This document shows, one piece after another, positions 6,560-58,737 of a stretch of DNA of 64,000 bases (position 1 is the first letter of the stretch; the number at the start of each line of letters is the position of its first letter). Below the pieces are notes generated by a model. The model worked only from the letters and a program-made list of their open reading frames with translations. It searched no databases and was not told where the DNA came from. The translations under genes and the position numbers were made by a program. This DNA is from Eukaryota sp. TZLM1-RC. Lineage: Eukaryota > Protista > Metamonada: BaSk clade. Where the stretch lies: contig JAUPSS010000009.1 of assembly GCA_040285825.1 (NCBI GenBank), positions 372,001-436,000 of the forward strand, given 5' to 3'.

Positions 6560-6945
6560 ACATTTGTAAAATAGAGCGGTCAAGAGGTACTTTTTATCAA
6601 ATTGTTCTACGTCCAGATAACTGGATTTTCACAGAGATAATCAAATCTTATAGATCATCAAAATGCCTCTACAAGGGATTTGTTTCTTTAGATTCCAATT
6701 TTGTATAGTTCTTAAATTTTGTTTTTCAAGGATTTGAACGTAATCAACATCATAATCATATTTTTTGGCCATTAAATCATTTTTTATGCTCTTCTTTTTT
6801 CGTTTGAAATTTTTATAAGCATTCGGATCCTTTGAATCAACATTTCGTATTCCCCTCTTCGAATGTTTTGCACACAAGCAGCACAACTTTTACTGATGCG
6901 GTACTCATCTACCAAGTACACTTTGATGTTAGCATTTATTTATTT
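6560..6945 (-). pseudogene. Fanzor1/TnpB-like relic: rearranged RuvC-II Glu, Zn-finger first half and C-terminus
   Basis: The minus strand reads NANIKVYLVDEYRISKSCAAC (E at 6904-6906). After frameshifts it reads KQIPCRGIL and then IRFDYLC. The second CxxC/NRD segment is missing. Confidence 0.62.
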
Positions 6946-6959
6946 TATAGCAATTCGTA

Positions 6960-7330
6960 GTAAATATAAAGCAAAATTGGTTTCCTTGATTGCTGAATCT
7001 CACACTCATTGTGTCCTTTGTCCTTTTGCTTTTTCCATACATGGTACCCTCGGACCACTTGTTTTATCTTTTTTGGATGATTTTGTTGAAATTGTAAAAC
7101 AACGTACAGGAAGAATTGTTGACAAAACGTTTTTGCAGAACAGAATTGTATTTTCAATTTTTAAAGGTGCTGTCCCGTTATTGTCTTCAGCTTTATTATC
7201 TCTTGGTTGCTTCTATGAAGGAAAAACTTCCAGTCAATTTTTGTTGACTGATTTGAGATATAAAGATTTAGAATTTTAATTTTTGTGTTTAGTTTTTGAA
7301 AGTAATAAATTAAAATTTTTTCTAAAAAAA
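6960..7330 (+). mobile_element. 5'-truncated CRE-like non-LTR retrotransposon, subfamily B (RLE C-terminus)
   Basis: KY...CPFAFSIHGTLGP...KDLEF*, then AATAAA and an A-tail; homologous to 17876-18477. Confidence 0.85.
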
Positions 7331-7334
7331 TCCT

Positions 7335-7790
7335 TTTTCAATCATTCGGAGGCAATATTCTTAAAAAAATTATCTGAATTTAAAATACACATTCTTTGAA
7401 CATTCCAAAAACGAATGACCAAAATGTATGAAGATGATCTTTTGCAAAATTTATGCAGTTCGATTGTTCTTTGTATGAAGATGTTCATTCATTATTATTA
7501 GAAAAAGGTGTGTACGAGAACAAACCGTCAGTTTCATCACTAGTTATCAACATTGTGCCATGAAGGTTTGGGCTATATGCCTATAATGAAGCTGTTGTAA
7601 CAAAAATGAGATTAAACCTGAATATTCCCTTTGACCGTCTTATATTGAAAAACATGTACTGTATTGACTACAGCTCATTTTGCGCCATGCTCTGAATTGT
7701 TCTAAACTGATAATTTATCGTTTTTCATCACCTGATGCTGTCAGAGACACTCTTTCAATATGGCAAGAAATGCAAGAATTCCAAACACAT
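7335..7790 (+). mobile_element. Degenerate subfamily-A-like non-LTR fragment (thumb to Zn finger)
   Basis: Homologous to 43530-43880 (RHALNCSKLI.YR...DAVRD). Confidence 0.75.
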
Positions 7791-8530
7791 TGAATTCGAA
7801 CAAATACATTTTTCTTTAAATAATAATTGGTTAATGGGAATATTCAAATATAAATTCATTTTTGTTACAAACGCTTTATTAGTAGCACACAGTCCAAATC
7901 TTTGTGGTACAATGGTCACAAACATTGAAGAATCTCATGACTGGTTTTCACAAACACCTTTTTTCCAATAACAATGAGTGAAGATCTTGATTTAAAACAG
8001 CCGAGCTGCATTTATTTTTATAAAGATGATTTTCATACATTCCAGTCAATCGTTTCTGTAATGTTTGAAGAGTGTAATTCAAATTTTTATAATTCTTTTC
8101 GGGTATATTGCCATTGAGTGATTGGAAAAGTATCGATTCCATTTTCTACAATTATTGAAATTTCTTCAGTAAACATTTTCCCCAACTTTCTTCAGAGATA
8201 AGAGGATTTGTAGAACGAAATATATGATTAAAGTTGCAACTAAAACATAGTCATATATTGGTAAATTTAATTTGTTTCTGTACATCTAAAATCATCATTT
8301 GGTCAATTTTCTCGGATAGTAATTTCAATTTATCAAACAATTCATTGGTAACTTCATCATTATTTCCTAAAAAGGAACCACAATGACGAATAGCATCAGT
8401 TGAATATAACTTCCCTTGAATTTCAATTCCATCAACTATTGTTGAAACTGGAGAATTTGAAAGTAAAAGACATTTAACACATTTTTTGATTAACTCTCTT
8501 CTTTTAGTGAAATTTTCTGAATCTTTAGTC
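7791..8530 (-). mobile_element. Degenerate subfamily-A non-LTR fragment (RT C-terminus/thumb), convergent with the previous copy
   Basis: Homologous to 52915-53290; carries the RT domain-7 motif IRHCGSFLG. Confidence 0.8.
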
Positions 8531-10744: not shown

Positions 10745-11435
10745 ATTTATTGAACATGCATACCTAGTTAAATTGATTCATAACTAATGGGACGAATATC
10801 ATTGAACCAAGATTTCATCTACAAACTCTTGATCTGCTTGCTGTCTAGCTAAAGCTTCTCTTATTCGATTGAAAAACCGAGGTAATTTATTAATAATTGC
10901 AAATTGAATCCGAGAGCGCCATAAAAAAATATCAAATGTCTTCATTGTTTTTTCTTGAACCATTTTTTTGAAGTCATTCAAAAAAGTTTCTGCTTCTAAT
11001 AATAGTCTTCCGTTTATCGAAAATGGGAAAACAATAAAAACTAGCTGTGTATTTCTACCAGCATTAGCTTCTTCAATAGGTTTATCATATTTTCTATGTT
11101 TTTCTTTTACTTTAAAATCAAGAGCACTCACAGGATTAAGTTTTCTTCTGTGCACCAAAGTATCATTTGTAACATTACATGAGACAAAGTCAACAACAGC
11201 TTCAGAGTTCTCAATCCAATCACAGTATATATCACCTCTATCATCAGAACCGATAATATTCAATGACAGTGTTTCTTTCAGCAGAGGCTCTTTGATACAC
11301 AATACTCTTACAGTTTGTGCCAAATTGAAAACAGTGTCTCTAACAGCATCATGTAATGAAGAACGATAAGTTATCAATTTCGGACAATTCAGAGCATATC
11401 GCAAAGTGAGTTGAGGTGAATTCGAGCAACTACAG
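10745..11435 (-). mobile_element. 5'-truncated CRE-like non-LTR, subfamily A (CCHC plus restriction-like endonuclease)
   Basis: CSC...ALNC, LHDAVRD, RGDIY, VVDF, KEKHRKY, FPFSINGRL, then stop, 3'UTR and AATAAA. Confidence 0.88.
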
Positions 11436-11439
11436 TGTT

Positions 11440-12495
11440 CCTCACAGCTTCGTTTCAAAGGCGTTTCAATTTTCAATTTGGTATTGTTAAACTTCATGGA
11501 ATGTGATTTTGTTTCAATTGGAGACTCTTCAATTTGAAAGAGTTTATTGTACGAAGTACTTTACTATGGAATTTTTGGTAGTTTTGTGCGACCTTCAGCA
11601 ATAATGTTTATTGTTATCATCGGTTTTTCAGTATTGTTGGCTTTTTTCGACTGAAGATCAATTCTTGGGGTTTTGACATCAATTCAAGGTAAAGCTGAGG
11701 TATTTAATATAACACCTTCTTTTGAATTCTTTAGCAATAATTTCTCAGCTGACCGTAAAATTATTTGAGTCATAAGAAGATTAAGTTTACGTCGCCTCTG
11801 TCTTGCAGATAGATTTGATGGTAAATTTTTATGAATTTTTTGAATATAACATTTTGTTCTGTATTAATTGGTGCAGAAGTTGAATCACTGCTATGTGAAT
11901 GACTACTGTTATGCATAGTTTTGGTTTTTCCAGAATTACCTTTGAGGTAATTTATTTTGCTTTTTCCTGACTGACTAGAAGACACTTGTCTCTCAATTTG
12001 TGGAGGAGGGGTTGATTTTACTGTTGACTTCCTGTTTTTCGGCCGACCATCACCACTAATGAATTGATGTGGATATAATGTTAATATTGCACAATATATA
12101 TTTTTTCTTAGTTCTGTAGCATTTACACCGACAGTGAGTTCAGGCCCTCATCAAAGACAATTATGTTTTCACATCAAAAAGAATATTCTGAATATAATGC
12201 AGCACGTCTCTGAAATTTTTTCCGATCAAATGTTCAAAAGGATTGGAGATGATCATTGATTGCATACCTGCAAGGCTAGTGTAAACAACACTGGTATCCA
12301 AGTTATTATAATTACTCAATAGTTGTTCAGCCCATAGATTCATCACAACATCAGTAATCCATGTTCCTGGCTTGAGACTGTCGAAATCAGCAGAATATAT
12401 GTTGATAGGACCAGGGTTAGATTCAACGTCTTGATTCATCGTTAAATCAACAGAAAAAGGGTTTGTTGATATAAGATGTTGGAAGCTACTGGGTT
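11440..12495 (-). mobile_element. Degenerate polyprotein repeat: 2A-like peptide, Ulp1-like protease start, AT-hook-like motif and K/S-rich region
   Basis: DLTMNQDVESNPGP (DVESNPGP at 12407-12430) is followed by DFDSLKPGTWITDVVMN and later GRPKNRK. A second partial copy lies at 4690-5170. Confidence 0.65.
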
Positions 12496-13149
12496 AAACT
12501 AATAAAATTGTAAACATAATCATCAAATTAAACATCATCAAAATAACAATAATCTAAAACAAAACACAATCAAAAAATACATCCCATATCTTAAATGATC
12601 ATAACCATGGCAGGCACCCGTATCATCACTCTCATAATGACTTAAAAAACTGCAAATACTCTACCCCCACAAAAGGATAAGCACGACGATTCCGTTCAGA
12701 AACCGAGGCTCTGACTCTTCGTTTATTCTTATAATCCAGGACCACTGTTCCAGACTGAGGAGTTCGGAAGAGCGAACTGAGACCGTTACATCGTTATCCT
12801 GTTTCTCGTGTTGCTGCATGATGTTAGAAAAATTTAGGTTGTCAAAATTTCGCTGATAGATGTCTAACATGCTGATTGCTTCTTCACCCTCAGCATCTTT
12901 TGACACTCTTCACAGAACCCTAGTCAGGAAACCTACTCAGAAGACATCATGTTCTAGCATCCCTCTCTCTGACTCCGAAGATACTTCTAGTGATGACTCT
13001 CATTCATCGATGCATTCTGCTTCTCCCTCCTGACCTTTAAAATCACCCAAAATAGCTTCTCCAACATTCAAAACATTGTCAGTCATGATAATTTAATCCT
13101 GACCACTTATCTTCGTTTACACTACCCTCAATATCAATCATGCACCCAT

Positions 13150-24189: not shown

Positions 24190-24560
24190 AAATAATTGAA
24201 AAATAGATTTAAAAATTTTTTATTGAAAACTAATGGTAATGAACTGCTTTTAACATTTCAAAGTAAAATTAATGACTCAGAAAACACAGATGAGCTGGAT
24301 GAACCACCGGAAAAGAAACGAAGATTAAAAAAAAGAAATGAAAAAGTGACCCTGATGCCACCAAAACCAGAGAAATACAGTTGAAGGGTACTCATAAATT
24401 TCCCGTCAAAATTACACCTGAAGCGCGTCTTATTGGCGTTGATCTGTGCCAATCAAGATTATGTGGTTACGTCTTAAATAATAATCAATGAGGAGTTATC
24501 CCTTATCCAAATGGCAACAGATACATGACGAAACCTTCACCCAGTAAACACATTCTTGTG
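24190..24560 (+). pseudogene. Fanzor1-like relic: WED motif, charged linker and RuvC-I
   Basis: RFKNFLLKTNGNELLLTF (F..I.TDG..+.F-like), then KKRRLKKRNEK. After one frameshift it reads EARLIGVDLCQSRL (D at 24441-24443), then SYPLSKWQQIHDET. Confidence 0.6.
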
Positions 24561-24609
24561 CACTTGGTTCTATTCACGTATTATCATTTTTAAATAATTA
24601 TCCAGGTTT

Positions 24610-26000
24610 CGAAGTTAGAAGTTACTTAGATGATACTTATATTTTTTGTCAAAAAGAAGTCAATATTGAATTGTTAGTAAATGAATTAGAATTAATTTTC
24701 AAGCAAATTGGTTTGAAATTAAATTTGACAAAAACCGAAGTGTTTTCAGTTGAAGATGATTTCATGTGTTTGGGATCTCCAATAGGTTCTACTGAGTTTG
24801 AATCCTCTTTTATAATTCAAAAAGTTCAAAATGAATTGATTCCCAGTGTATTTTTATTAAAATCATTACCACTACAAAGTCAATTTTTCATAGTTAGACA
24901 CTGCGTTAATTCAATTTTGATGTACTGGGCCCGAACAGTTCCCTATGAATCCACCAGAATGGGTTTTCATCTTTGGGTTTCAGAATTTGTTGCTTATTTC
25001 AACTTAATAGGATTGGAACAATCAAATAATTTTGATTCAATTAATTTGCCTCACTCTTTGGGTGGATTAGGGTTTTTCCATCTAACGCCAAGTTGCACAT
25101 ATTTGCTATTCAGTTTCTGTATACTTGGCTGTACGTGATCTTGATTTAACAAGTTTAATTCCAAGTGATCAGTATAGGGTTTTACTATCAGCCTTATCAC
25201 CTTCTTTTGCTGGTTTTGACTCAATCTGGGACAGACGAATTAAAATTTGCCAACGTCAAATCACTCATTTATTTTATAAGGAAAAATTATCAGAATGTGA
25301 ACGACTGCTATTTATTTCAAATTGTGACAGTCAATCATCTTGTATTTTGACAATTTTGCCTATTTCTCCAAATTTCACGTTCTCACATGATTGCTTTAAA
25401 TACCTAATAAATCTGAGATTGCTTCAAGGAGAACAATTTGTGATATGTCCTTTGTGTGGTTATGGAGACCTAGGCTTGGATCACTTGTTTCAATGTAGAA
25501 AAATCTCGAGAATGGTTACACAAAGACATGACGAAGTAAATAATTTTATTAACGAATTAAATGATTTTGAATCTGAAAAGGAATTTAAATTTGGTTTAAA
25601 TAAGCAGTTACGTGTTGATGGCTTTCAAACGTCAACTAAAATTGCTGTTGATGTTACCATAGTTGGAGGTTATGGTAATAATTGGAATGATGCTTTTTCG
25701 AAAGCTTATTCTGATAAAATTGCAAAGTATTCAATTTTAAAAGAATTAAATTTAATTAACCAAATTGTTCCTCTCGTTTTTAGTGTTCATGGGGGTTCTT
25801 ACACCAAAACAAAGATACTGTTTGACCAATTTGGATGGAATGAGGTAGCAGATGAAATAAGTTGTATCATTTTGAAGAATAGCTTTAAATGCCACTGTGC
25901 TTTTAATTATATTCTTCAAATGAAAAGAGAAGATCGTCAATGTTGGTAGGTAGTTTTTTTAGTGTTCAAGTAGTTTCTTCTTAATCCTCAATAAAAGTAA
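24610..26000 (+). mobile_element. Distinct CRE-like non-LTR lineage G (RT from YLDD through RLE), frameshifted
   Basis: SYLDDTYI, IGLKLNLTKT, CLGSPIG, LGGLG, CPLC...HLFQC, RHDEV, RVDG, VDVT, KIAKY, PLVFSVHG; AATAAA at ~25990. Confidence 0.88.
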
Positions 26001-26446
26001 ACACTTCTCCAACCAATATTCCGTTCAAAATTTAAACCAATATTTGAACCATTGGAATTTGGTCAGGAGGAAAGTGTACTGTGAAAGCTCTGTTGAGAAG
26101 CTGAATGGGGAACCTTAATGAACAGAAACTAACACTTTTGAAAAACTTTTATTGTATTTTTACTGTTCTTAAAAACTTTTGATACCTATCCATAAATGCC
26201 TTAGTAGCATTTGGTAGATCCACTTAGATACATCAAGTCGCGAGGCTTTGTTCTGTTAATCCAGTAGGTGTATTTAAGTGAGGTAGCCCATTGATGAAGA
26301 TCATGATCGTCTTTGTCAAATGACACTATATGTTCTTACAGCCTGTGAATAGACATTGAGAAAGTTGAAAACAGGAGTGAATTTCATATGGGAATGCATG
26401 ATAACAATAGTATTTATCTTCTATCCAGCAGTACCTCATCATTATA

Positions 26447-27862
26447 ATGCACAATAACATCTCTCATCAGCAGAATCATCTTCTTGATGACCTGGAGACA
26501 CTTTCTGCAGAGGAACAGTCTATATTTCTTGAGACTTTAGAGCTCTGCGAGTTTCACCTCTCCAAAGAGGTTTTAAATCTTCAACAGACAAGGGAAACAA
26601 ACTCAGATGTCAGTCCTCTCCCGAGTGAACTTTCTACCAATCTATCCTTGATGAATGTAATTGAAAAGGAAAGACTCCATAAACTGGGTCTTTCTGAAAT
26701 TAACAAGGGACACGTTGCTGTCGTAATAATGGCTGGTGGTATGGGTACTAGACTTGGATTTGAACATCCAAAGGGCATGTATTCAATTGGATTACCTTCT
26801 AACAAATCACTATTTCAGCTTCACTCCGAGAAGGTACTGGCCCTGAGCCGGTTAGTTGGGTCTGTTGGATGTCTTCCTTTGTGTATCATGACATCCCCTT
26901 TGAATCACACTGAGACTGTGAACTACTTCAAGCAACATTCCTACTTTGGACTTCCTGCTGAATCTGTTCACTTTTTCCAACAAGGGACGTTTCCTTGCTT
27001 CGATTCCAGTGGTAATGTCATTTTGGAGAGCCCTGGTGTTATCAGTCGTTCTCCTGACGGCAATGGGGGAATTTTTGCAGCTTTAGACAAAAGTGGTCTT
27101 TTACGAACCTTGACTGATCAGAATGTCTGCTCGTACTTTGTAATGAGTGTAGACAATGCTCTTGCCTTGCCTGCCGAACCTCATTTCATAGGGTACTGTG
27201 TGGAGGGGAAGAAGAAGGTTGCCAATCTATGCATTGAGAAGGTTGATCCAAATGAGTCTGTTGGCGTGGTCGGCCTTCGAGATGGACTGCCTCATGTAAT
27301 AGAGTATTCAGAACTTGACGACAGTCAACGGCACTCTACTTCTGATGATGGACATCTCTCATTCAACTGTGCCAATGTAGCTATGCATTACTTTCATGTG
27401 GATGTTATTTCATCAGTGCTTTCTGGAAAGTTTTCAATGCCTCTACACCTTGCTCATAAGAAGATTCCTTACTGGGATAGTAGCTCTAAAAGGACCGTAA
27501 AACCCACCGTCCCAAATGGATTCAAGCTTGAAACCTTTATATTTGACGCTTTTAGGGCAGTGGATTCAATTACTGAATTTGGATGCCTTGTTCATTCCCG
27601 AGCTGAAATTTTTGCCCCAGTCAAGAACCCTGCAGTGGAGGGTCAGTCTGATTCAGCCATAACTGCCAGGAGAATGATACTTGATTTACATGCTCAATGG
27701 GTCAAATCTTGTTGTGAGACAAATGTTGATACTTCAGGTTGCTGTATTGAAGTTTCTCCATTGGTTTCTTTATTTGGTGATGTACCCATGTTACCAATTT
27801 CCGGAGATGGTACGTATGTGATTGAAAATGTAGATAATCAAATAGTTATAAACAAGTGTTAG
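26447..27862 (+). CDS. UAP1: UDP-N-acetylglucosamine pyrophosphorylase
   Basis: MAGGMGTRLGFEHPKG, SPDGNGG, SVDN, EYSE, KLETFIFD, FAPVKN. Confidence 0.95.
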   Translation: MHNNISHQQNHLLDDLETLSAEEQSIFLETLELCEFHLSKEVLNLQQTRETNSDVSPLPSELSTNLSLMNVIEKERLHKLGLSEINKGHVAVVIMAGGMGTRLGFEHPKGMYSIGLPSNKSLFQLHSEKVLALSRLVGSVGCLPLCIMTSPLNHTETVNYFKQHSYFGLPAESVHFFQQGTFPCFDSSGNVILESPGVISRSPDGNGGIFAALDKSGLLRTLTDQNVCSYFVMSVDNALALPAEPHFIGYCVEGKKKVANLCIEKVDPNESVGVVGLRDGLPHVIEYSELDDSQRHSTSDDGHLSFNCANVAMHYFHVDVISSVLSGKFSMPLHLAHKKIPYWDSSSKRTVKPTVPNGFKLETFIFDAFRAVDSITEFGCLVHSRAEIFAPVKNPAVEGQSDSAITARRMILDLHAQWVKSCCETNVDTSGCCIEVSPLVSLFGDVPMLPISGDGTYVIENVDNQIVINKC

Positions 27863-28034: not shown

Positions 28035-29745
28035 TCAAGGTTGTTCCAAATGAGAAAGAGACCTCAACCTGCTTGTGTCCATGAATCTTTGTCTTGGAGA
28101 ACCAGGAAGATGCAAAACTTCGTTTGCATCCTCATCTTCCAGTATTCCGTGCTCTCCTCGTCTAGACACCATATGTTCCAAGCCAATTCCAGCACAATCA
28201 TCAGTATGAACCCCAATAAAATTTTCTTCAATTGCAAGCTCTGTTTCATGAACAAACTTAATAGGGTCAAACTTTCGTGGGAATTTACCAGATTCGAGTT
28301 GAGAAATAGATCTCTTTCGTCGTTTTTCAATGCCAACATTCGAATCAAGCGCTTCATCTGCAGTGTGACATACTCCATAGATTGGTCTTTCAGTTCTATC
28401 TGGATTGAAGAACAAACCAAAGGCCGAGAGCATTGAACTCATTGCAGTTGGCCCCCCGTCCAGACAGTATCGATTGTTCAACCTCCAGCACATGCCAAGA
28501 GCCTCTTCAGGGGTGCTAAAGAATTCAAGCTAGAGTGAAATGCAAAGTGTAAACAAACCATTTTTCTTGCCCAATAAGTTCTCAAACATGGAGAAAGAAA
28601 TCCTGAAGACATAAAAAGCCTATGTGTCATGTTCCAAACATCATCGGGTGTCCTACCCGCCTCAACGAGAGCAGGATTGGTCTCTAATGGACGAGAGTCT
28701 CCTGCGTGGTCAATGAGAGTTTCCCTACTCCATTCAGGGAGGGCCTGTAACAGGGCAGTTCCTACATCATAGATAGCAGCATTATAAGGAAGATTCAACA
28801 TTCTGCGGTAATGTTCTTGATTATGGTACAAAAAATTGAACTGAAGCTCCCTAAAGACATAGACAGATTCGATGAACTTTTTGAGTCCAACAGCCGCTTC
28901 ACTCCTTGCAGGTTCGGAAAGTTGGGCTACATATGTTTGAGCAGCCAAAACGACTTCTGAAGGGGAAATCTGTCCTTCTGCTAGCCATGGAGATAAACGA
29001 GACGTTTTTCCGGAGTTGGGAGTAGCCAGAGCGTCAGGATAATGAGCTAATTCTTCAAGAAAATAGTGCAAGCGAACCCTCGCTGAGCTCAGACCACCTT
29101 GCCATCCATTTGCGGGAGGCACGCCAACATCGAGGGCAAATCTAGGAATGAGTGTATGGTCCGTTGGATCTAGCTTCTCGATGGGAGGAAAAGGAGCCAT
29201 TTTTTTGGAGTTAACGAATGATAATCCTTCAGACGGATCTTCTGACAAAGAGAGATATGTAGATAGAACAGCATTGGCTCTGGGCAAGAATGCAGTGTAA
29301 GTTTGTGTGTTGACAATTCTTTGAGGAGGAACGATAGTACTCGTACTAATAACTCTGGCCCTAGGCCCAAAGCGTGAAAATACAGCTGTATCAAACCTAA
29401 AGTTAATGTTTACAAGGTAAGTTCAAACCCAAGTTCTTCAGGTAAATACGAAGAATCCAAAAAAACTTCAGCAGCCTTGTCAGTATAGAAGTTGAGCACA
29501 GGAACTACTTGGCTTGATGAGAATAGTGCTACACTACAGTCTCTTTCTACACATCCATCAATCATTTCTCTTACCCCTTCCAGTAGAAACGCGAGCTTCC
29601 TGGCGGATAGATGTTCAGGTAAGAATATTAATACGCAGAGAGGTAAGTTGAAGGAGTTTGCTGACTGAATTGCTTCAATGAGAGCATCATTATTTTCTGC
29701 CCTGATGGCAGACCTTGCAATATACAATACAGTTGAGAACGCCAT
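28035..29745 (-). CDS. Divergent class II CPD photolyase-like protein, 3 exons (~549 aa); introns 29397-29428 and 28530-28558
   Basis: RAENNDAL, SRLSPWL..GQIS, FIE...FREL..NF, LPEWSRETL..HA.D.R, DVWN, RTYWARKM|LEFFSTPEEAL...LNNRYCLDG. Removing two GT-AG introns joins the ORF pieces in frame. Confidence 0.85.
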
Positions 29746-31336: not shown

Positions 31337-34300
31337 TGTTATAACCCTCAGCAATTACCAATTCAATATTGAGCTGCTCTCACTTTTATAACACACTTCT
31401 TGTTCCTTTACCATTTGTATTTTAAGCGCAACAATAGCATCAATCAGACACAACATAAAAGACAATTCAGTTTGTTGTTTCATAAACTAAAATTACATTT
31501 ACACTATGAACCCATTAGCATGTTTACCTTTAATGTTGGCGCCCTAAGGCTTTTATAATATGAATACAAAATAAATTATATTTATCTCAACCACTTTTGC
31601 AACCTCAGGCAACAATAATTATTGGCCGTATTAGGTTATAGGTATACCGCTTACACAACTCACAGCTATCGAACAGAGGATATCTTCAGCAGATATCATG
31701 TCAGTTTGGAGACGTCCTGAGGATGACCACCTATATGGTTGATCACTCCATATCTGCATCAATTAGGGGAAGCAGCGGTTTAATAACCCTCTCACCCGCC
31801 CTTATTGCAGAATATTTTCTCTTGGGTATAGATAATTTTGCCATCACCAAGGAGCTGGCAAGCCATTGGACAAGAGAAGATTTATGGGACCCTTCAACAG
31901 GTACAACTTTGTTAGACCTGATTTCGACTACCAGGAGACACTTTCTAGCTTGGTGCCAAACAACAGGAAATAGGCACACCATGGAACTTTTGAGAAAACA
32001 AGCTGAAAGAGATGAAGACATCCCATTAGGCCTTTCGACCATGAGAACGTTCTCTAGAGGAGCAACCCCATCTGGTCCAGGTAATAAACGTCGCTCGGGA
32101 GGCGGATTCAAAGGAACTCTCCAAAACAAATATGTCCCTGAAAGACATGAACGAGAGGGATCTAAGTTCTGTACATTCTGTAACGTTACCGAAGGAAATA
32201 ATCCTATCGGTCACACGGTTTCGAATGCAAAGATCCCCGTTGTACCAGGAGCAAGGTACCAAAGGAATTGAGGTTTAAGATCGGCGAGGCTCATCAGCCT
32301 GCGAGAAGTGGCAGCGTAGCTAGAGGCCGAGGTGGCCGTGGTAGACGTGTTTCTAGATTTAGAGGTAGGGGCCGAAGTGCCCATTTTAGAGGACATAAAG
32401 GTAGAGGTCAGTATAGAGCTATTTATTACATAAATACACAAGAGGATACATCATCAACATCATCCCCTTCTGAGAACGTGTCAGCTAGTTCGAGCATGAC
32501 CTCTCACAGACGGATTGACCGTTTCAGCAACAGGGTCAGAAATACAGGAAACTTTCCCAGTCGGAAACAAATCAACGCAATCAATCATAATCAATCAATT
32601 GCCGATTTCGGAAACCCAGTTAACAACTCCCCAACAGCTCAACAATTCTAACTAAATCCTCTACAATTCCACAAGCCCAGCTCTGATATCAATAGTATTT
32701 TTGGTATAAATTCTACGGTTAGGGAGAATCACATCAGATCCCAGCGTTCTCCATTTCTAAGATTGGAGATTTTAATAAATAATATAAAAATGATTGCAAC
32801 TATTGATTCGGCAGCGTTTTGTTCGGTTATAACAGAAGATTTGGCTAACAAATGCAATATGTCAATCAATAGAGATGATACAATTGAGTTCTTACCAGCC
32901 AATAATGTATCAAGTAAATCGCCAGGGAGTGCAAATGGTATTCTGTCGTTCAACGTAGGAAGCATTGCGCACCAAGTACATTATAGACATACTCTTCCCA
33001 TAATCCCGGGTTCGAACAAATTATTAATAGGGATAGACATGTTAAAAACACTTGGGCTTCAGACGGATGATGGTCTTTTCATTAGATTAGACAAAGAACA
33101 CCGCACTTTGTTAAATGCAGAATCTGAATTCGACTCAAGAATCGCTCAACATTCGATTGGGACCTTAGATAACCAATCATCGAGTCCTTCCGATTTTGAG
33201 GAGCAGTTAACTAGATCTGGTTGCGAGATAAAATTAGATGATGATAATAATGAATTTAAATTAACGAGTCTACTAGGAATTTTCAGCGATGTTTTTAGTG
33301 AAACTCCAAACGGAAAAGGAATCGATTGTGAACCTCTAACAATCCCCTTTAGAGATGAGAATGCTATAGTACATAAACCTGCTAGACGATTAAATCCCAG
33401 TAAAATGGAAATAGCAAACAAAATATTTGATGAACTGATTGAAATGGGCTATGCAGTTGAATCTAATTATAAATTCAGCTCTCCTATTGTCTTAGTTATA
33501 TATCCTGACGGCAAGAAACCCAGGCTAACTGGAGACTTTAGTGGTAAAGATGGAGTCAATGCCCACACGATTTCAGTAGAGCCTAATCTACCTAGAATTA
33601 GTGATATTTTAGAATTTTTAAGTAGAGCAGATTACATAGCCACGCTTGATTTACCAAAAGCTTTCTGGCAGATGAATGTAGCTGAAAAGGACATTGAGAA
33701 AACATCAATCTCAATCCTTGGAAGGTCAATTATGTTTAAAAGAGCTTGCTTCGGATTAAAGAACATCCCAGCAGTTTTTCAAAATGTAATGATGGAAATA
33801 TTCCAAATTGATGGCGTTTTTATATATATCGATGATATTATAATAGTTGGAACGACTTTCGATGAATTTTATAAGAGATTACAAAGAGTCCTCCAATGCG
33901 CCAGAAATAGACGTGTAAATATAGGTCTACGCAAATGTAAATTCGTAACATCCAAACACCCTATTGATATTTTAGGAAGCACCTTCCTAGATAAAACCAG
34001 ATTTATTAGTAAGAAAAAAATCGAAGCATTGATGAGAATCCCTAGACCAATCAGTGAAAGAAGTTCGCTCATTGGTAGGATCCATCAATTATATAAGAGA
34101 CTGGCTTTTAGGTATTTCCGAATTAATAGCTCCAATTAATGAGTTAATTAAAGGAAAACTTAGAGTAGTAAAATGGATCAACGAGCATGACGATTATCTT
34201 AAACAAATAAAAGATTTAATAATTAATCACATGCCCCTAGAATTACCAGCTCCGGGCAAGCGTGTACTAATAAATACTGACGCATCAGATGTAGCAGTTG

Positions 34301-35662
34301 GAGGTGTTATCTGGCAAGAAATTGAACCATACTCCCCTGCAGGAACCCCGCTGAATGAAAGGAAAGTGAAACCCTTGTCGTTTTATAGTAGATTACTTAC
34401 AGAAACACAAAGAAAATGGTGCACTTTACAGAAAGAATTATACGCAATTCTTCTGATTTTAACTGAAAGTTGTTCAGAAAGCTACCTTTTGACTAGACAT
34501 GTAACAATTTTCACTGATCACAAAATTATCGCATTCCTGGCCACAGCCCCTGAGAAAAATAGAATTGTAAAGAGATGGCTGCCGATACTATCTCAATTCG
34601 ACTTTGATATAGTCCATGAACCAGGTGAAGATAACCACTGGGCAGATATGCTATCGAGGAATATTGTATTTAGATCAAAATGAGGAAACTCCTTCCATGT
34701 GTAGTATAAATATACCAGATACTTTACTTTCGAATTACGAGATACCTCCAATAGACGATGATTCTGATTCGGACCTGGAAGACATCCCATCAATTTCATC
34801 TCTAAGTAGACACCAGGACTTACCTATTTTTTCTTCTTGGTTCTCTAAAATAAGATCTGAACAACAAATAGCCAAAAATAATAATGACCCTCTATTTGAG
34901 AATGCAATTCTAGACGAAAATACTCAAATTTGGAAAAACAATAAAAATAAAATTTTAATTCCAAAAAGCCTCAGAAAACAGGCACTATTATTAATTCATG
35001 GATTGGTTCAATCAGGCCACCCCAGCAAAAACGACAGTCTACATAAACTGTCCAAAAGCGACTTTTTCTGGCCTAATATGAGAAAGGACCTCATAAACCA
35101 CATCAAAAGATGCCCAACTTGTCAAAAAACGGCACCAGTTAAAAGAACAAAAACACCTTCCACAGGTTCCCTTTGGACAGATCGTCCTTTTGCCAGATTA
35201 AATGTTGACACAATTGGACCTCTGAATACTGATAGTGATGGTAATAAATACTTATTAGTATTTGTAGATTCTTTTACTGGATATTCAATTCTAGTCCCTC
35301 CAAAAGAAATCAATGCCTTAGAGACCGCAGACGCTTTGATTTGGAACGTTTGCGCAATTTTTGGCATACCTATGTTAATTCATAGTGATAATGGTCCCGA
35401 GTTCGCCAATGAGACTTTTAAGATAGTGTGTAATAGATTAGCCATTGAGATGAGTAACTCAATACCCCACTACTCTGATAGTAATGGACTCGTAGAGCGA
35501 AAACATAGAGACGTTCTACAATGCTTGAGGAAATTATTAATAGATTTTAATGATTACGGAAATTGGTCTACTTATGTACCCATATCCCAACTATTTGTAA
35601 ATTCCACTAAAAGCAGAAAGACAGGTTTTACACCTTACGAACTAATGTTCGGAAAAAAATGA
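31337..35662 (+). mobile_element. Ty3/Gypsy LTR retrotransposon, 3'-truncated, with frameshifts (5' LTR ~31337-31614; gag-PR-RT-RH-INT)
   Basis: gag with CTFC...GH..(E)C and an RG-rich tract; PR IDSAA; RT LDL..AFWQ, FGLKN, YIDD; RH TDASD, KELYA, TDH, ADMLSR; INT H..GH..CPTC, VDTIGP, SDNGPEF, NGLVER. It ends at PYELMFG with no 3' LTR. The LTR left edge is uncertain (31321 or 31337). Confidence 0.93.
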
Positions 35663-44430: not shown

Positions 44431-44829
44431 CAATCATCTTTCCAAAACACTAATTCATTTCATTTCAAAACTGCAGTTAGCGAATGCCAGCTCCTCATAT
44501 TGTTAGAGAACGTTTGGAGAAAGGTCAGCAAAAACAAACTTTTCGGTGAATGAAACTACTCAAAACTGCGGCAAAGCTTAAGAAATCGTTACCAAGTGCT
44601 CCAATCCGGTCATAAAAGAGCCTCAACAAGACAATCCACCAGCTATTTCTGAACATGAACAATCACCAGTTGAATCACAACCTCCCAAGGAAATCAAAAA
44701 GAAACGCAAAGTCAAGATTGATAAGAAGGGACGTCCAACACTATCTTCCCAGATTATTCTCATTTTAGATAAACTGGATAAGTAGTATGCTTCGTCGTTG
44801 AATTCATGAAAAGAAATGTGGTTTGATAA

Positions 44830-45932
44830 TGTTGTTGTTGAACTCAAATTGAATTAGTAGGTTTCTTTGTATTTCGACTGATGACGTGATACTCATTTAT
44901 GAATCAGTTTTATTAATAAACAACAGATTTCTCTCTCTCCTTCGTGTGTTCATCTGCCTAACGGCATCAATAATTATTGGCCCTTCTTATTCCAGATGAC
45001 TGTTCCTTCTGTCAACCTCCCGTCTCTTTCTTCCATGAAAGTTGAAAGTGTTCTCTTGTTCCTACAAGAGTGGAAGATCTATTCTTCTGTGACTTCTAAG
45101 AAAGAGCTTGTTCCAGCAAGACTCTTGGTCGATTCTTTTCTGTTAGAGTCCCTATCTCTCCAGAAATCCGACGTCTCTTCCAGTGACGATGTTCTTCTTA
45201 GATATCTTCAATCTGTCGTATCGTTCGCCATGTACGAAGATTTTAGTCTGGCTATGTTAGAACTGAAGCTTGATGTCCGTATTGGTGACGTCCGAGAACG
45301 TATGTCCTGTTACCTGCGACGTTTCCTCCAGGTAAAGAGTAGGGCTTCCGGACTGAAGTTACCAGACACAGCTTTTCTGAATCGATTTGCCAGAGGAATT
45401 CTTCCCGTAGGTCTTCAACGTTCTCTACTAGCGAGAATTCGAGATGATGTATTCCCAGATCTTCACTCTCTTGTCGAAACCACTACTGATGAGCTGTTGG
45501 ACTGCTCTAGGGTTGCTTCATGGACCCGTGGTTTCAAAACCTCAGTGAATGATGTGGAACGTACGGCTGGCACTAAAACGAGGTCCTCTTGGCGCTCTCA
45601 GGATTTAAAAAATCAATCGTGCTTCAAGTGCCACAAGCCTGGACACATCTCCCGCGATTGTCCATCTAAAATCAAACATGAGGTAAATTATTTGTGTCAC
45701 ACAAACGATGCACCAAAGAGTTTAACAAACCCCATATCTTTCCTCTATTGAGCCAGTACTGTATTTGTCCTCAGAAAAGTGGGAAAAAGTAGTGTTGTTG
45801 TTGCACTCAAATTGAATTAGTAGGTTTCTTTGTATTTCGACTGATGACGTGATACTCATTTATGAATCAGTTTTATTAATAAACAACAGATTTCTCTCTC
45901 TCCTTCGTGTGTTCATCTGCCTAACGGCATCA
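44830..45932 (+). mobile_element. Young gag-only LTR element (TR-GAG-like), 1103 bp
   Basis: 140-bp LTRs at 44830-44969 and 45793-45932 (one mismatch seen), TG..CA ends, ATAA on both flanks, polypurine tract AGAAAAGTGGGAAAAAGTAG before the 3' LTR. Confidence 0.93.
44996..45751 (+). CDS. Gag protein with CCHC zinc knuckle
   Basis: Intact 251 aa; CFKCHKPGHISRDC; YLRRF...FARG capsid-like motif. Confidence 0.88.
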   Translation: MTVPSVNLPSLSSMKVESVLLFLQEWKIYSSVTSKKELVPARLLVDSFLLESLSLQKSDVSSSDDVLLRYLQSVVSFAMYEDFSLAMLELKLDVRIGDVRERMSCYLRRFLQVKSRASGLKLPDTAFLNRFARGILPVGLQRSLLARIRDDVFPDLHSLVETTTDELLDCSRVASWTRGFKTSVNDVERTAGTKTRSSWRSQDLKNQSCFKCHKPGHISRDCPSKIKHEVNYLCHTNDAPKSLTNPISFLY

Positions 45933-46280
45933 ATAAACACACATTTTTCTTTACAAGCTATGTCAAAAACATTGTTCATACTGTTCAGACAAGAGCATCT
46001 GCTGTCCCAAATCGGTGTCCAAACTGAAATGAATTCATCACTTTAAGTGATTCACTTTATTGGTAAATTTCTTCAAGTAAAGTAAAGTGGATATTGTCCA
46101 GTGATATTTGAATTCTGTGTTTTTTACCTCAGAATGTTCAAAAAATTCCCAACAGATCAATTTCAAATTTACGTTTTTGACTGAGAACACTTCAGCACCA
46201 TCTGGTGATATTATATGAAAGCTTGGATTAGAAGTAAGACTCGCCTTCACCAAAACTGAAAATCTCGCTTTCGGAAATTA

Positions 46281-46543
46281 ACAAATCCCAGATTCCATAG
46301 AAGAGAGAAGACTCCTGTTATAACGTGTCATAATTTATTAGCTTGTAATAGTGAGAGTTGCAAACTCAGTAACAAAGGCTCAACAAAGCTGTTCAGCAGA
46401 AATAAGTTGGCTTGTCTGAACATGTTTGCAATTGCTGAAGCCAGAATGAGTGGTAATGAAAGGCCTCAATATCTGTGTAGTAGTTAGCTTTTGTAATTAT
46501 TCCACACAAAAATAGATCGTTTACTTATAGGAATTTCCCACAT
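46281..46543 (+). pseudogene. Fanzor1-like relic: Zn-finger second half, RuvC-III, C-terminus and conserved 3' tail
   Basis: 68 open codons, TNPRFHRREKTPVITCHNLLACNSESCKLSNKGSTKLFSRNKLACLNMFAIAEARMSGNERPQYLCSS* (stop 46485-87); homologous copy at 58516-58737. Confidence 0.8.
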
Positions 46544-52239: not shown

Positions 52240-53495
52240 ATTGAACTACAACACTTAATTAAAAAAATATAAAATAAAAATGATCAGAACCAATGGGACT
52301 AAATTTGATGAACCATGATTTCCTCCACACAAACCTGTTCTGCTTGTTTTCTCGCCATTGCCTCTCTTATGCGATAAAAAAACCGAGGCAGTCTTCTAAT
52401 TATTGCAAATTGAATTAACGACCCGCACAAAAAGACATCAAATTTCTTCATTGTTTTTTTGAACAAATTTTTGGAAATCATTAAATAAAATTCTACTGAT
52501 AGTCTTTCGTTTTTAGAGAATGGAAAAACAATAAAACTAGTAATCGTTTCCAATCAAAATCGACGTCTTCGATATCTTCGTCATATTTTCTATGTTTTTC
52601 ATTCCCTTTAAATTCGAGAGCTTTTACTGGATTGAATTTCCTTTTTTGAACCAAAGTGTTATTCGCAACATTACAGGAGACAAAATCAACAAGAAAATCA
52701 GAGTTATCAATCCAATCACAGTACATATCTCCTCTATAATCAGAACCAAAATTATTCAATGACAGTGTTTCTTTCAGCAGAGGTTCTTTGATACACAAGA
52801 TTCTTACAGTTTGTGTCATATTAAAAACAGTGTTTCTGACAGCATCATGGAATGACGAACGATAAGTTATCAATTTCGAACAATTCAGAGCATGTCGCAA
52901 AGTGAGCTGAGGTGAATTCGAACAAATACATTTTGTTTGATAAGAATTGATTAATGGGAATATTCAAATATACCTCATTTTTGTGACAAATGCTACATTG
53001 GTAGCACACAGTCCAAATCATCGTGGTACAATGGTTACAAAAAGTGAAGAATCCGATGACTTGTTTTCACAAACACCCTTTCAACAACAATGAGTGAAGA
53101 CCTTGATTTAAAACAGCCGAGCTGCATATATTATTATAAAGATCATTTTCATAAATTCCAGTCAATCGTTTCTGTAATGTTCGAAGAGTGTATTTTGAAT
53201 TTGAAAGATTCGTTTCTGGACTATTGCCATCGAATGATTGGGAATTGCATCGACCTTATTTTTCTACATTAATTTTTGAAATTTCTTCATTTAATGCAAA
53301 AACAGTGGAACTTTGCGTTGTCATCAATAAATCTTCCCAATCTGCCAATCTTTCGGAAAACTCAAAGATTGCATTTCTGCATCCACCAACAAAAGCACAC
53401 GATGTAAGAATAGAAGCCTTCGTCCACCCTATACCGCCATAATGAGGACTAAGATAGGCATGATCTGTAATTTGGAACATTTTACATCCCAGTAA
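52240..53495 (-). mobile_element. Subfamily-A non-LTR 3' portion
   Basis: YGGIGW, RHALNC...FHDAVR, RGDM, LVDF, KHRKY. Confidence 0.88.
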
Positions 53496-53514
53496 TTGCG
53501 ACAATACTTTTGCA

Positions 53515-53790
53515 CGTTATTCATTAAACTTCTGGGCCAATGGCCTAGTGATAAGAAAATTAGTGGATCAAAATATATGATTACAGTTGGAATTAAAAGC
53601 GATACATCCCATATAACTTTTATTAAATTTATTGTAAACTTTCGAAAACTTATTGAAAAGGCGATAGAAGATAGAGGACTTACCTGTAATGGAACACGTA
53701 TTGGAGGCCTCAAAGAATATACAGCTTTGCAACATTCACAAAAACGTAATGGTCGGCCAGAAGAATTAATTTCCAGAGAAATGAAATCGA
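53515..53790 (+). pseudogene. Possible heavily deleted Fanzor1-like relic
   Basis: In order: IKLLGQWPSDKKISG (++GxW), DRGLTC, then with frameshifts WNT(Y)LEASKNI and NGRPEEL. Confidence 0.4.
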
Positions 53791-54833: not shown

Positions 54834-54915
54834 GTTTCGACACCGCTATTTGTGAATCATATAACAACAATAGGAATATGTCTATATCTATATCTATCAA
54901 TAGGTGAATGAAAAA

Positions 54916-54989: not shown

Positions 54990-55846
54990 AGCCGTGGAAG
55001 GTTGCTGACAGTGAAATATGATGAATCGTCTTTTGTCTAAAGAGCCACCTTTGGGGATTAGACATAGAAATGATTGAACAGATATTTATAGTGATATCCT
55101 TAATTCTAATTTGTTAAATTGATTCTAACTTCAATTTTTGAAACTGTACACCTACCAAAAAAAACTCGTAACTAATGGGACTAAATTCATTGAACGAACA
55201 GTTCCTCTATAAAATATTGAAATCTTCTAAGTTATAAATTACATAAATCTTTGATTTATATTTAGTTCGCTTTTTTACACTTGAATGAAGCCACTTACGT
55301 TTTTTCTTATAATAATGTTATTAGCGTGTCTGTACTTTCAGCGCATTCTCAGGTAACATGTCAATAATTGTAATTTTTAAAGCAAGTACTTGGTTCACTC
55401 TTCATCAAGAATTAATTATGTAGGAAATTTTTCTCACATGTCCACGACAAAATAAAAGAGTTGAGGTTCACTTGACATAGTTCAAACAGTGTAATTTGAA
55501 TATTTTGTTGTAGAGGTTCTAAAGATTTTTTGAAAGCGAATCTTGGTTTAATGAATATCGCCCTTTATCTTGAAGATTGCCATGTTGAGTGTTACATTAA
55601 ACTAAACTAAATTTTAGGACTACATTAAGTTTTGTTGTGAAATCCCAAAATATTTCAGTTTCTATGAAAAAACTAGTGATAAAATATACAATGCCAATAC
55701 TTCTCAGGGTGGAAGATCTACATTAGAAGCTGTTGTTCAGAGCACGGCTGCACTTATAGAATAATTGTTGTTTGACAATTATACAAAACTTTTCAAAACT
55801 CAATCCCTCCACAACTCAATCCTATCCACAGACATCATTTGTATCA

Positions 55847-58426
55847 ATGAGTGCTCTTGAGACCCTACGCCGTTTAAAGCAAAACAAGGGTGGTTCACCT
55901 GCTGCCGAAGAAACTACCCCTAACCGTTTGGCTCGTTTAGCAGCTTTCCGCAAAGCTCGTCAAATGTCTGCTAACGAGGGTTCCCAAGACCAAGATCCAG
56001 ATACTCCTATTCTTTCTGAACAATCCAACGAAGCACTTTCTCCCCCCTCAAAGGAAGCCGCATGTCCAGTCCATTCTTTCCCCTCACCTGCTCTAGATGC
56101 TACAAGCCCTCGCTCCTCACACCGCGGCTCTCGCGTCGAACCTCTTATGGAGGAAGAGAAAATCCAAATCTCTAATGAACGGTCCCACTTCAATGCACCC
56201 CTCGAACTAATCTCCGAAGTAGATCGCCTCAGAGATGCCCTGAAAGAGTCCCAACGAAATCACGAACTTGCCGTCGACCAAATCAGAGAGTCCGAAAGCC
56301 AGCGTTATGAGAAGCTCTCAACTGAACGTAACGATCTTTGGATGCAAATAGAAGACCTTCGCCAGAAGATTCTGACAACAGAACGTGACTATGAAGCTAA
56401 ACTATCAGAACAACGTGAAGGTTTCGAGACTTCTATTGAGCAGCTCAAAAAGGAACGTGATGATGCTTGGAAAAAGATTGAAGAGCTCCAACTCAAAATT
56501 CACGATGTACAGACTTCACTTGAAGCTCGCATAACTGAACTCCACGAAGCTGAAGCATCTAAAATCGACGGCATCGTTTCTGAACGTGAACAGGTTTGGT
56601 TGCAGAATGAAGATCTTCGTCAGCAGCTAGCTAGAGTTCAATCGCAATACGAAACTATGATTCATGATATTAGGCAATTTGAAAGTGAACGTTTTGAGTC
56701 TCTGTTGGCTGAAAAACAGAAATTGGTAACTGATTTCGAGGAGGAGAAGAATCTTTTATTGCAAGAAAATGACAAGAAAGATTCTACTCATAAGGAGGCT
56801 TTGGAATCTTTGACTGAAGAGTTTAACGCCAAGATTAGTGATCTTGAAGCTCAAAACCAGTTGGAAAAAGAACAGCAAATGGCAAAGCTTGAGGTTCGTG
56901 AAAAAGAGCTCATCGAACAATTACAATCAGCTCAGAACAACTTTGACTATTTGATAAGCTGTGAACGTCAACGTATTGATAAAGAAATTTCCCAATCAAG
57001 GAGTTTATTTGAAGAACGTGAGTTGGCGCTTCAAGCTCAAATCAAGGCTGAAAGAGATCAACTTCGTGAAACCTTGCTAGAAGAAGAAGCAATTCAAGCT
57101 GCTGCCAAATTGGATTTTGAGAATAAAGCACGTGAGCGATATGAAGAATTAGTTCTTAAGGCCAGAGATCAGCTTAAGGATCACTATGAGGATCAATTGG
57201 AAACTCTGACTGCCAAAGTTGACGAGTTGATGACCGACAGAGCTCAATTTGAACAGAATTTGATTGAACAAAGTCAGGAAAAGCTTGATGCTCTCACCGC
57301 AAAGTATGAGGGCCTTTTAGAGGAGCGAGCTGCTTTGAACTCTGAAAATGATGCTAAATTACGCTGTTTGCTTGAAGAAAAGGACAGAGAAAGCCAAGAA
57401 AAGATCGATACACTGACTGCCAAATACGAGGCTATTATAGACGAACAGAGCAAGGTCCATGCAGAAAGTGAAGCCAAACTTCGTGATTTGATTGAGGAAA
57501 CAGATCTTGAAAGTCAAACTGATCGTATTGCTTTTGAAGAACGTATCCTCAATCAAGCAAATGAAAGAATTGTGCAGTCCAGACAAGCCACCCAGGAACT
57601 ACTGGACTCAATGTCTGCTAGTTTGGAGGAAGAAAGATCTGAAAAAGGGAAGCTTGAGTGTCAGGTTGTCTATCTTGAGCAAAAACTCCGCAAAGTCAAA
57701 CATGCTGCTCTCTTGTGGAGATCTGATTATCAGAAGAACACCAGAAGTGAGGTTGAAAAATTAATGAAGTCCATTGAGACTAGGGTCGTGCAACATCAAC
57801 AATACCTGGATAATCTCCAATTGCAAGAACAAGAAGAACGTTTGGCTGCTGAAATTAGGCAACAAGAACGTGAGGTTGCCGAACAGACAATCAGAAAAGA
57901 ATTAGAACATCAGAAAAGATTGGACGAAGAAAAAAGAATGCAAGAAGAATCCCAACAATTGCAAAAGGTTAAGGAATCTGAAACTGCTCTTGTTTCTTTG
58001 AAGAAACAAGCCCATGAGTTATGGAAAGTTTTGGAAATTCCTGCTGAAGATTTGGTTGAGTTCTTGATGGATGTTGATTCTAATGCTCCTTATGAACCTT
58101 CCATCCATAATCTCTATTCCAAGGAAGTTGAACGTCTTTCTGATCTAGTACCTTTAATGGAAACTATCACTAGAAGAGAATTTATTAAGTATAGAATTCG
58201 AGAATTTAACAAGTCTGCTTCTAATCCTGACCGTCTTTTCTCTGGGGACTCATCTAGATTAATCAGGGAGGAGAAACACCGTAAAGAATTCTTGAGGGAA
58301 TTGCACAGATTAAATGAAGAATTGGCCAATAATGTCCCTGGTTTTGAAAATAAGTATGGTAAGCCTTTGATCTATAAGGGTAAATCTATCAGAGAGGAAG
58401 TTTTGAAGGATTTGAGGTCGATGTAG
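55847..58426 (+). CDS. Long coiled-coil protein with a C-terminal MAP65/Ase1/PRC1-type microtubule-binding domain
   Basis: ELWKVLEIP, RREFIK...SASNPDRLF...RLIREEKHRK...FENKYGKPLIYKG; first ATG at 55847. Confidence 0.7.
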   Translation: MSALETLRRLKQNKGGSPAAEETTPNRLARLAAFRKARQMSANEGSQDQDPDTPILSEQSNEALSPPSKEAACPVHSFPSPALDATSPRSSHRGSRVEPLMEEEKIQISNERSHFNAPLELISEVDRLRDALKESQRNHELAVDQIRESESQRYEKLSTERNDLWMQIEDLRQKILTTERDYEAKLSEQREGFETSIEQLKKERDDAWKKIEELQLKIHDVQTSLEARITELHEAEASKIDGIVSEREQVWLQNEDLRQQLARVQSQYETMIHDIRQFESERFESLLAEKQKLVTDFEEEKNLLLQENDKKDSTHKEALESLTEEFNAKISDLEAQNQLEKEQQMAKLEVREKELIEQLQSAQNNFDYLISCERQRIDKEISQSRSLFEERELALQAQIKAERDQLRETLLEEEAIQAAAKLDFENKARERYEELVLKARDQLKDHYEDQLETLTAKVDELMTDRAQFEQNLIEQSQEKLDALTAKYEGLLEERAALNSENDAKLRCLLEEKDRESQEKIDTLTAKYEAIIDEQSKVHAESEAKLRDLIEETDLESQTDRIAFEERILNQANERIVQSRQATQELLDSMSASLEEERSEKGKLECQVVYLEQKLRKVKHAALLWRSDYQKNTRSEVEKLMKSIETRVVQHQQYLDNLQLQEQEERLAAEIRQQEREVAEQTIRKELEHQKRLDEEKRMQEESQQLQKVKESETALVSLKKQAHELWKVLEIPAEDLVEFLMDVDSNAPYEPSIHNLYSKEVERLSDLVPLMETITRREFIKYRIREFNKSASNPDRLFSGDSSRLIREEKHRKEFLRELHRLNEELANNVPGFENKYGKPLIYKGKSIREEVLKDLRSM

Positions 58427-58515
58427 GGCTTTTGTTTTGTATTTTAGGTATTTGTTATAATAAACTAGATTTTTGATGTATTTCAAAGCAGATGAAGAAT
58501 TGTTGAAAACTAGGA

Positions 58516-58737
58516 ATGTTGGGAAATTCCTCTTGAGTACACAATCAACTTTCGTGTGGAATATTGATTTATCTGGAATAATTTTACAAAAACTATCTAC
58601 CACACAAATACTAAGGGCTTTCATTACCACTAATTCTGGCTTCAGCAATTGCAAACATATTCTGACAAGCCAGCTGGTTTCTATTGAACAGCTTTGTTGA
58701 ACCATTATTAATGAAATTACAACTCTTACTTGTAAGC
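58516..58737 (-). pseudogene. Second copy of the Fanzor1-like C-terminus plus 3' tail
   Basis: TSKSCNFINNGSTKLFNRNQLACQNMFAIAEARISGNESP*YLCGR* (stop 58593-95); tail ends GGAATTTCCCAACAT. Confidence 0.78.

Follow-up and report, generated by a model that had tools for sequence, protein, structure and literature searches.

A 64,000-nucleotide (nt) stretch of contig JAUPSS010000009.1 from Eukaryota sp. TZLM1-RC (GCA_040285825.1), hereafter the window, contains two firm C-terminal relics of Fanzor1, a eukaryotic nuclease of the OMEGA type (short for obligate mobile element-guided activity). These relics are very probably dead, 5′-truncated copies of a Skoliomonas-wide, transposase-less element whose full open reading frame (ORF), as homologous and intact copies show, encodes a leader, a 2A-like motif, an optional Ulp1-like protease, a linker, a DEDDy exonuclease and Fanzor1. 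A protein encoded at 26447–27859 of the window is recorded for that contig, and proteins of the assembly carry the label Eukaryota sp. TZLM1-RC. By elimination, the source organism is taken as Skoliomonas litria, which belongs to the BaSk clade of metamonads and is a free-living inhabitant of soda lakes. The hosts known for Fanzor1 are fungi, algae, animals and viruses. The Skoliomonas genome paper covers S. litria, GEM-RC and TZLM3-RCL (10.1101/2023.05.03.539051). No report of a Fanzor in a metamonad was found in the literature searched (Repbase and subscription papers lay outside the search), and an exonuclease–Fanzor fusion is likewise absent from it, including the main texts of Fanzor discovery and survey papers and of a 2026 review; such absence is not proof of novelty.

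A first-pass annotation of the window had described a dispersed Fanzor1-like family of several diverged lineages, with better copies and a host transposon to be sought elsewhere. The dispersed family is borne out by about 25 gene models in S. litria, all of them fragments, and several lineages do coexist there, namely a clade with the catalytic triad Asp-Glu-Asn (D-E-N) and two D-E-D lineages in locus L005. Better copies exist as uninterrupted ORFs in the sister genome TZLM3-RCL. No host transposase was seen inside any element examined, and the 5′ half of the element, with its fused exonuclease, 2A-like motif and Ulp1-like protease, had been missed.

The exonuclease–Fanzor1 family

Three of the uninterrupted TZLM3-RCL ORFs are P0049 (940 amino acids, aa), P0038 (1096 aa) and P0045 (1192 aa). 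The intact single ORFs share one order, in which an optional 2A-like motif and Ulp1-like protease precede a Pol delta-type 3′–5′ exonuclease that is followed by Fanzor1. Statements on intact ORFs are confined to P0049, P0045, P0038 and P0046, because the gene models P0005, P0053, P0055, P0040 and P0077 are not directly translatable from their loci. In P0049, residues 91–238 match yeast Pol delta (E = 3e-6; ESM Atlas 0.95 to PF03104 clusters) and residues 239–939 align along SpuFz1 of Spizellomyces punctatus (E = 5e-24), placing a complete Fanzor1 directly after the exonuclease. A Foldseek search with an alignment-based model of P0049, whose predicted local distance difference test (pLDDT) score of 54 leaves the C-terminal half alone usable, returned SpuFz1, PpFz1 and GtFz1 as the top matches, with E = 1e-20 to Fanzor1 against 2e-3 to Fanzor2; a single-sequence AlphaFold model (pLDDT 33) was left unused.

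The exonuclease has been maintained along with the nuclease. The ExoI, ExoII and ExoIII residues are kept over four subfamilies at 29–50% identity, and all exonuclease and RuvC motifs are intact in seven gene models. Nei–Gojobori ratios of nonsynonymous to synonymous change (dN/dS) are 0.19–0.31 for the exonuclease and 0.24 for Fanzor between subfamilies, and 0.10 (residues 105–240) and 0.12–0.13, respectively, within one subfamily; these ratios indicate that both domains are under purifying selection. Upstream of the exonuclease lies a 2A-like DxExNPGP motif, often with the Ulp1-like protease. It reads D(V/I)ExNPGP in L007, L008 and window positions 12407–12466, and DFEANPGP in L005, ribosome skipping being only predicted. 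L005, an S. litria locus, carries the 2A-like motif, ExoI, ExoII, ExoIII and Fanzor in that order, though broken, and relatives are present in TZLM3-RCL and GEM-RC1. A search of viral and metagenome contigs for related loci returned no relatives. Word-indexed homologue searches returned Skoliomonas proteins alone, but they also missed SpuFz1-like proteins and so say little about range. One 2027-aa gene model, P0037 (RCL1_001071), has a DEAH-type helicase ahead of the exonuclease and Fanzor, which could reflect cargo capture or a fusion made in the gene model.

The DPG motif at RuvC-I is a hallmark of Fanzor1 (PMC10711439). It is kept in the S. litria proteins P0055, P0069 and P0075–77 and in the intact sister-genome ORFs, and in none of the window relics. 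The alternative catalytic Glu, six residues ahead of the first CxxC, is found in the family proteins and at window positions 6865–6933. At RuvC-III an Asn occupies the catalytic position in both firm window relics and in 45 of the 46 gene models that cover the site. In a 39-row IQ-TREE analysis, 15 Skoliomonas D-E-N rows, including the window relic at 46279–46487, form one side of a branch supported at 96/96, in a midpoint-rooted tree with many short rows that holds Fanzor1-like rows only and leaves out GtFz1. A reading of the Asn as the mark of a dead nuclease was rejected. GtFz1 cuts with Asn at RuvC-III and its N658D change lowers activity, SpuFz1 D606N exceeds the wild type in activity, and the D-to-N change brings no gain of activity in Cas12 or TnpB (PMC11423790). 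Since the D-E-N triad is active in GtFz1, the clade is, by this analogy, not a dead lineage; the RuvC-I Asp and RuvC-II Glu are also retained, unlike the loss of catalytic residues that marks TldR-like proteins. By every sequence feature that could be tested the family is Fanzor1, of the known D-E-N variant, its activity and RNA being predicted.

Several further sequences bear on this site. A divergent fifth D-E-N subfamily sits on a long branch within the clade (TZLM3-RCL, L003:13060–13635, − strand), and one S. litria copy, P0065 (P9112_000901), has Asp at RuvC-III. In P0009, an unrelated Fanzor1 from an ENA metagenome, the residue is Asn, whereas it is Asp in P0008, the nearest relative of P0009, from which it follows that the Asp/Asn change occurred more than once.

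Fanzor relics and other features of the window

The window was scanned with a hidden Markov model (HMM) built solely from non-Skoliomonas Fanzor1 matches, with the reversed window as the null (best E = 0.41); search pieces were kept separate and in-script read-throughs were marked X. The two firm Fanzor1 C-termini lie at 46279–46487 (+) and 58593–58733 (−). The former, which is 5′-truncated and adjoins a non-LTR (long terminal repeat) retrotransposon fragment, retains the second half of the zinc finger, RuvC-III with Asn, the RP.YL end and the stop codon. It was detected over 46248–46484 at E = 2e-26, and among PDB entries the 75-aa translation of 46260–46484 matched PpFz1 (9cf0; E = 4.4e-8) as well as SpuFz1 (E = 0.011), aligning the Asn opposite the RuvC-III Asp. 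The same 75-aa piece matched 35 proteins in a library of 1.84 billion, nearly all of them Fanzor1-like C-termini, and the relic pieces had no match in Pfam or NCBIfam. The relic is 85–89% identical at the nt level to L002, L005, L006 and L012. The second relic, of the same family, has one in-frame stop and the RuvC-III Asn, was detected over 58596–58733 (E = 2e-8), and shares 84% nt identity (58593–58737) with the first (46281–46487); both show 83–89% DNA identity to other loci of S. litria, and 80–89% identity to a multi-copy family of that genome. Their 3′ tails follow at 46488–46540 (+), which ends in TTTCCCA at what would be the right end of the element and has eroded stems (folding z-score +0.75), and at 58520–58592 (−), which carries a 19-nt internal insertion. 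Being dead, the window relics add little beyond copy number, and the interest is carried by the family.

Pieces of the 5′ half are also scattered through the window. A leader region with the 2A-like motif DVESNPGP lies at 12408–12879 (−), 72–81% identical in nt to L005 and L012, and is assigned to the element because the same 5′ stretch occurs together with the Fanzor 3′ terminus in each of those two S. litria loci; L012 unites in one copy sequences matching window positions 12422–12879 and 46282–46543/58574–58733. At 12300–12407 (−) the motif is followed by what may be a decayed start of the Ulp1-like protease (tblastn: P0045, E = 1e-4 over both; P0111, E = 0.014). The basic linker that precedes the exonuclease is found at 11594–11953 (−), identified from its translation and from 88–92% nt identity to 4770–5160, and is cut short by a non-LTR fragment (10745–11434). 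A second, frameshifted copy at 4568–5160 (−) continues from the linker (tblastn E = 2e-6) into the ExoI motif FDIET (E = 1e-3; the exonuclease HMM gave E = 0.02, where the best null score was 1.3), ExoI (4568–4772) being the only exonuclease motif left in the window. On the strength of the L012 and L005 copies, the 2A–Ulp1 relic at 12.3–12.9 kb, the linkers at 11594–11953 and 4770–5160 and the ExoI piece near 4750 all belong with the Fanzor relics.

All the motifs quoted in the first-pass annotation are present in the sequence, but its reading of five sites as relics of a single family spanning RuvC-I, II and III is hardly credible: one is at least half reverse transcriptase (RT), one is unplaced and one is of another lineage. 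Matches to the Fanzor profile were obtained at 46281–46487, 58593–58737 and 6865–6930, and not at 24190–24560 or 53515–53790. The segment at 6865–6933 (−) is probably a relic of a different Fanzor1 lineage, with the RuvC-II Glu and CxxC; its 22-aa E-x6-CxxC stretch (6865–6930) scored E = 4e-4 and hhalign gave 86% (E = 5e-6) for 6787–6939, while the remainder of 6560–6945 did not score against the Fanzor1 HMM. The site at 24190–24547 (+) may either be a look-alike of Fanzor WED and RuvC-I or represent RT domain 2-2a, as the upstream portion of the non-LTR relic that comes next, neither reading being significant. TNG and IGVD are present within 24190–24560, and the RuvC-I-like motif at 24433 is DLC, not DPG. 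The IGVD piece reached 0.1% with hhalign, there was no match to the Fanzor1 HMM, and a frameshift-aware WED/RuvC-I HMM gave 3.3 bits (rank 28), under the null maximum of 8.0. A match to RVT_1 (E = 1e-6) begins directly downstream on the same strand, at 24548, and the RT domain 2-2a reading of 24342–24520 reached a suggestive p of about 0.05, on par with the best Fanzor comparisons and not significant. The downstream relic itself (24548–25946, +) carries RT and a restriction-like endonuclease (RLE) and belongs to a family distinct from the other RLE relics of the window. As a Fanzor, 53515–53630 (−) was rejected: it forms the RT thumb in a non-LTR retrotransposon of the RLE type, 53145–53630 (−) matching an RT ORF at E = 2e-31. 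The non-LTR element, which overlaps the listed site on the other strand, has 83% nt identity to an L005 copy over 1.3 kb. No Fanzor signal was obtained with the HMM across 53515–53790, and the last 150 nt (53633–53783) were unmatched in the searches. RuvC-I is thus not demonstrated by sequence within the window.

One further site had not been listed. A fragment from the interior of a second Fanzor-like family, of D-E-D type, lies at 26087–26404 (+), 82% identical in nt to L005 3938–4275, which continues into an ORF matching Pfam Cas12f1-like_TNB (E = 0.0035). It belongs to one of the two D-E-D lineages of S. litria, those with the canonical RuvC-III Asp, which were seen at L005:3588–3911, 4224–4691 and 4990–5157 (+) and at L012:2506–2561 and 3186–3677. 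In both loci one of these lineages has left a relic 0.3–0.7 kb upstream of the exonuclease–Fanzor 5′ end, by chance or by targeting.

The intergenic DNA of the window is rich in RLE-type non-LTR relics and LTR pieces. It includes a frameshift-broken Gypsy-type LTR retrotransposon with protease, RT, RNase H and integrase (31642–35659, +), an imperfect inverted repeat made by two head-to-head non-LTR fragments (7330–8133), and a small gag-only element (44827–45936) whose flanking 147-nt direct repeats are 99% identical and so point to a recent origin. Host genes include a tandem pair of membrane transport genes (PF03547; 15825–16949 and 18626–19750, 90% identical), a photolyase-family gene (28035–29422, −; PF00875 by record annotation) and a TBC-domain gene with a perfect 93-nt tandem repeat of 4.9 copies (1005–1458).

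Element ends, proposed mechanism and alternatives

Homology between copies ends sharply past the stop codon, after 52 nt in the TZLM3-RCL subfamily RCL-A (four copies), 59 nt in RCL-B, also of TZLM3-RCL (two copies), and about 53 nt in the window family (six copies), and beyond this boundary the flanks are unique in all three subfamilies. Compared by eye, four RCL-A copies have 3′ flanks unlike one another, so that guide homology from parent to daughter is not in evidence. The tails consist of a stem-loop followed by a short terminal stem, a pattern that recurs with differing sequences; folding z-scores are −2.3, −2.0 and −1.9 in the best copies and near zero in others, including those of the window. 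The SpuFz1 omegaRNA occupies the corresponding 3′ position (PMC10432273), and the conserved tail is a candidate omegaRNA scaffold. In two full RCL-A copies the sequence opens with TTTCCA and closes with TTCCA, which predicts a target-adjacent motif (TAM) of TTCCA; the sequence is expected at both ends if the 5′ target copy lies in the TAM and the 3′ copy in the scaffold (PMC13565253). Many copies are 5′-truncated at variable breakpoints. Searches for an adjacent transposase and for terminal inverted repeats (TIRs) or target-site duplications (TSDs), as envisaged in the first-pass annotation, found no TIRs or transposase inside the element boundaries of L005 and L007–L012, and neither a poly(A) tail nor a variable TSD at the ends examined. 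A relic of a hAT transposase lies about 2.4 kb upstream of the Fanzor element in L012 (103–1533, −), with no shared ends established.

How a live element would work can be put forward with about even confidence. The last ~55–90 nt would fold as the omegaRNA scaffold, the flank beyond serving as guide, and the D-E-N RuvC site would cut an empty allele, made up of TAM plus flank; with the filled allele as template, repair would then restore or spread the element, as in other OMEGA systems (PMC13565253). Fanzor cuts about 17–19 nt past the TAM (PMC10432273), which would leave, at the left junction, a short 3′ tail on the TAM side with no match in the filled donor. The exonuclease, of proofreading type and tethered to Fanzor, would trim this tail and so allow synthesis to copy the element, a task for which a 3′–5′ exonuclease is suited. 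Yeast Pol delta proofreading removes short non-homologous tails. New insertions would arise in trans, or through repair of breaks, beginning from the 3′ end and in many cases halting early; they may come from an HUH enzyme in trans, from an RLE reverse transcriptase acting in trans or from copying driven by repair. In its strongest form, in which the exonuclease–Fanzor1 polyprotein is a self-sufficient homing element that cuts, trims and lets host repair copy it from the 3′ end with no transposase, we regard the proposal as doubtful. If true, this would make it a naturally occurring eukaryotic editor, RNA-guided and of the cut-and-trim kind, and the first among OMEGA systems to have a domain dedicated to end processing. 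Several points weigh against the proposed mechanism. The hairpin z-scores are modest overall (−2.3 to +0.75), and the terminal direct repeat is seen in two copies only and is absent from the 5′ ends of L005 and L012. Because intact Fanzor ORFs without the exonuclease occur in the P0007 pair and in the 5′-truncated L010, the exonuclease may be dispensable. Its tail-trimming role leans on the Pol delta precedent, and engineered exonuclease fusions impaired MmeFz2 (PMC12923547). The omegaRNA, cleavage and homing are predictions.

Three other explanations were weighed. A nuclease-dead, RNA-guided binder of the TldR type, in which Fanzor would only target and the exonuclease or Ulp1 would be the effector, is suggested by the near-universal RuvC-III Asn (45/46 gene models), the intact exonuclease motifs and the failure of D-to-N changes to raise activity in Cas12 and TnpB (PMC11423790); it is improbable, as the RuvC-I DPG and RuvC-II Glu are retained, Asn permits cutting by GtFz1 and is of benefit to SpuFz1 (PMC11423790), and the dispersed, young (95–98% identical) and decaying copies resemble a selfish element. 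Mobilization of the element RNA in trans by RLE-type non-LTR retrotransposons, with Fanzor and the exonuclease as passengers or aids to target-primed insertion, would explain the fixed 3′ end, the variable 5′ truncation and the frequent adjacency of relics to non-LTR fragments, and non-LTR elements reportedly carry 2A-like peptides and Ulp1 domains. The ends examined show neither the poly(A) tail nor the variable TSD of such insertions, however, and adjacency is expected anyway in intergenic DNA rich in transposable elements, so that we consider this unlikely; it concerns solely how the element moves, and Fanzor could still be active.

A non-autonomous Helitron2- or Replitron-like (HUH) element that has captured the exonuclease, Ulp1 and helicase pieces as cargo is a tentative alternative with perhaps one chance in four. 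RCL-A has hairpins at both ends, no TIRs, a short terminal direct repeat and variable 5′ cargo; Chlamydomonas CRe-1 Fanzor Helitron2 elements are likewise overabundant at the 3′ end (PMC3627910), and terminal direct repeats are known in Replitrons (PMC10288648). Against these likenesses, no Rep/helicase transposase lies inside the boundaries examined within the loci retrieved, and an in-frame exonuclease on which purifying selection acts in four subfamilies and three genomes is unlike passive cargo. The exonuclease–Fanzor1 homing proposal, taken together with the descent of the relics from such an element, is probably the best explanation as a whole.

Relation to known systems

A natural, selected, in-frame exonuclease–Fanzor fusion with a clade-wide D-E-N site offers proteins to test (P0049, with a predicted TAM of TTCCA and a short scaffold), and bears on the roles of Fanzors in eukaryotic genomes and on the spread of transposase-less elements. 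Its exonuclease resembles the family-B Pol delta proofreading domain in having ExoI DxE, ExoII NxxxFD and ExoIII YxxxD, and differs in its setting, with no polymerase domain and with Fanzor1 directly behind it in frame. GtFz1 of Guillardia theta (PDB 9cer) shares the non-canonical D-E-N triad, which is active there (PMC11423790); identity is 15% (Foldseek), and no exonuclease has been reported in GtFz1. The Fanzor1 Helitron2 elements CRe-1/2/3 of Chlamydomonas share terminal hairpins, 3′ overabundance and 5′ truncation, whereas the Skoliomonas element has no identified Helitron partner or variable TSD. The closest comparison is with SpuFz1/Spu-1 (PDB 8gkh) and PpFz1 (9cf0), along which the Fanzor part aligns at full length, with the DPG motif, alternative Glu, zinc finger, NPRP and RP C-terminus in common; these elements, too, are multi-copy and transposase-less, with a right end shortly past the stop. 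No ~30-nt TIRs like theirs were found in the Skoliomonas element, which leaves many 5′-truncated copies where SpuFz1 and PpFz1 leave internal-deletion ghosts, and it is set apart by its N-terminal exonuclease, 2A-like motif, Ulp1 and RuvC-III Asn.

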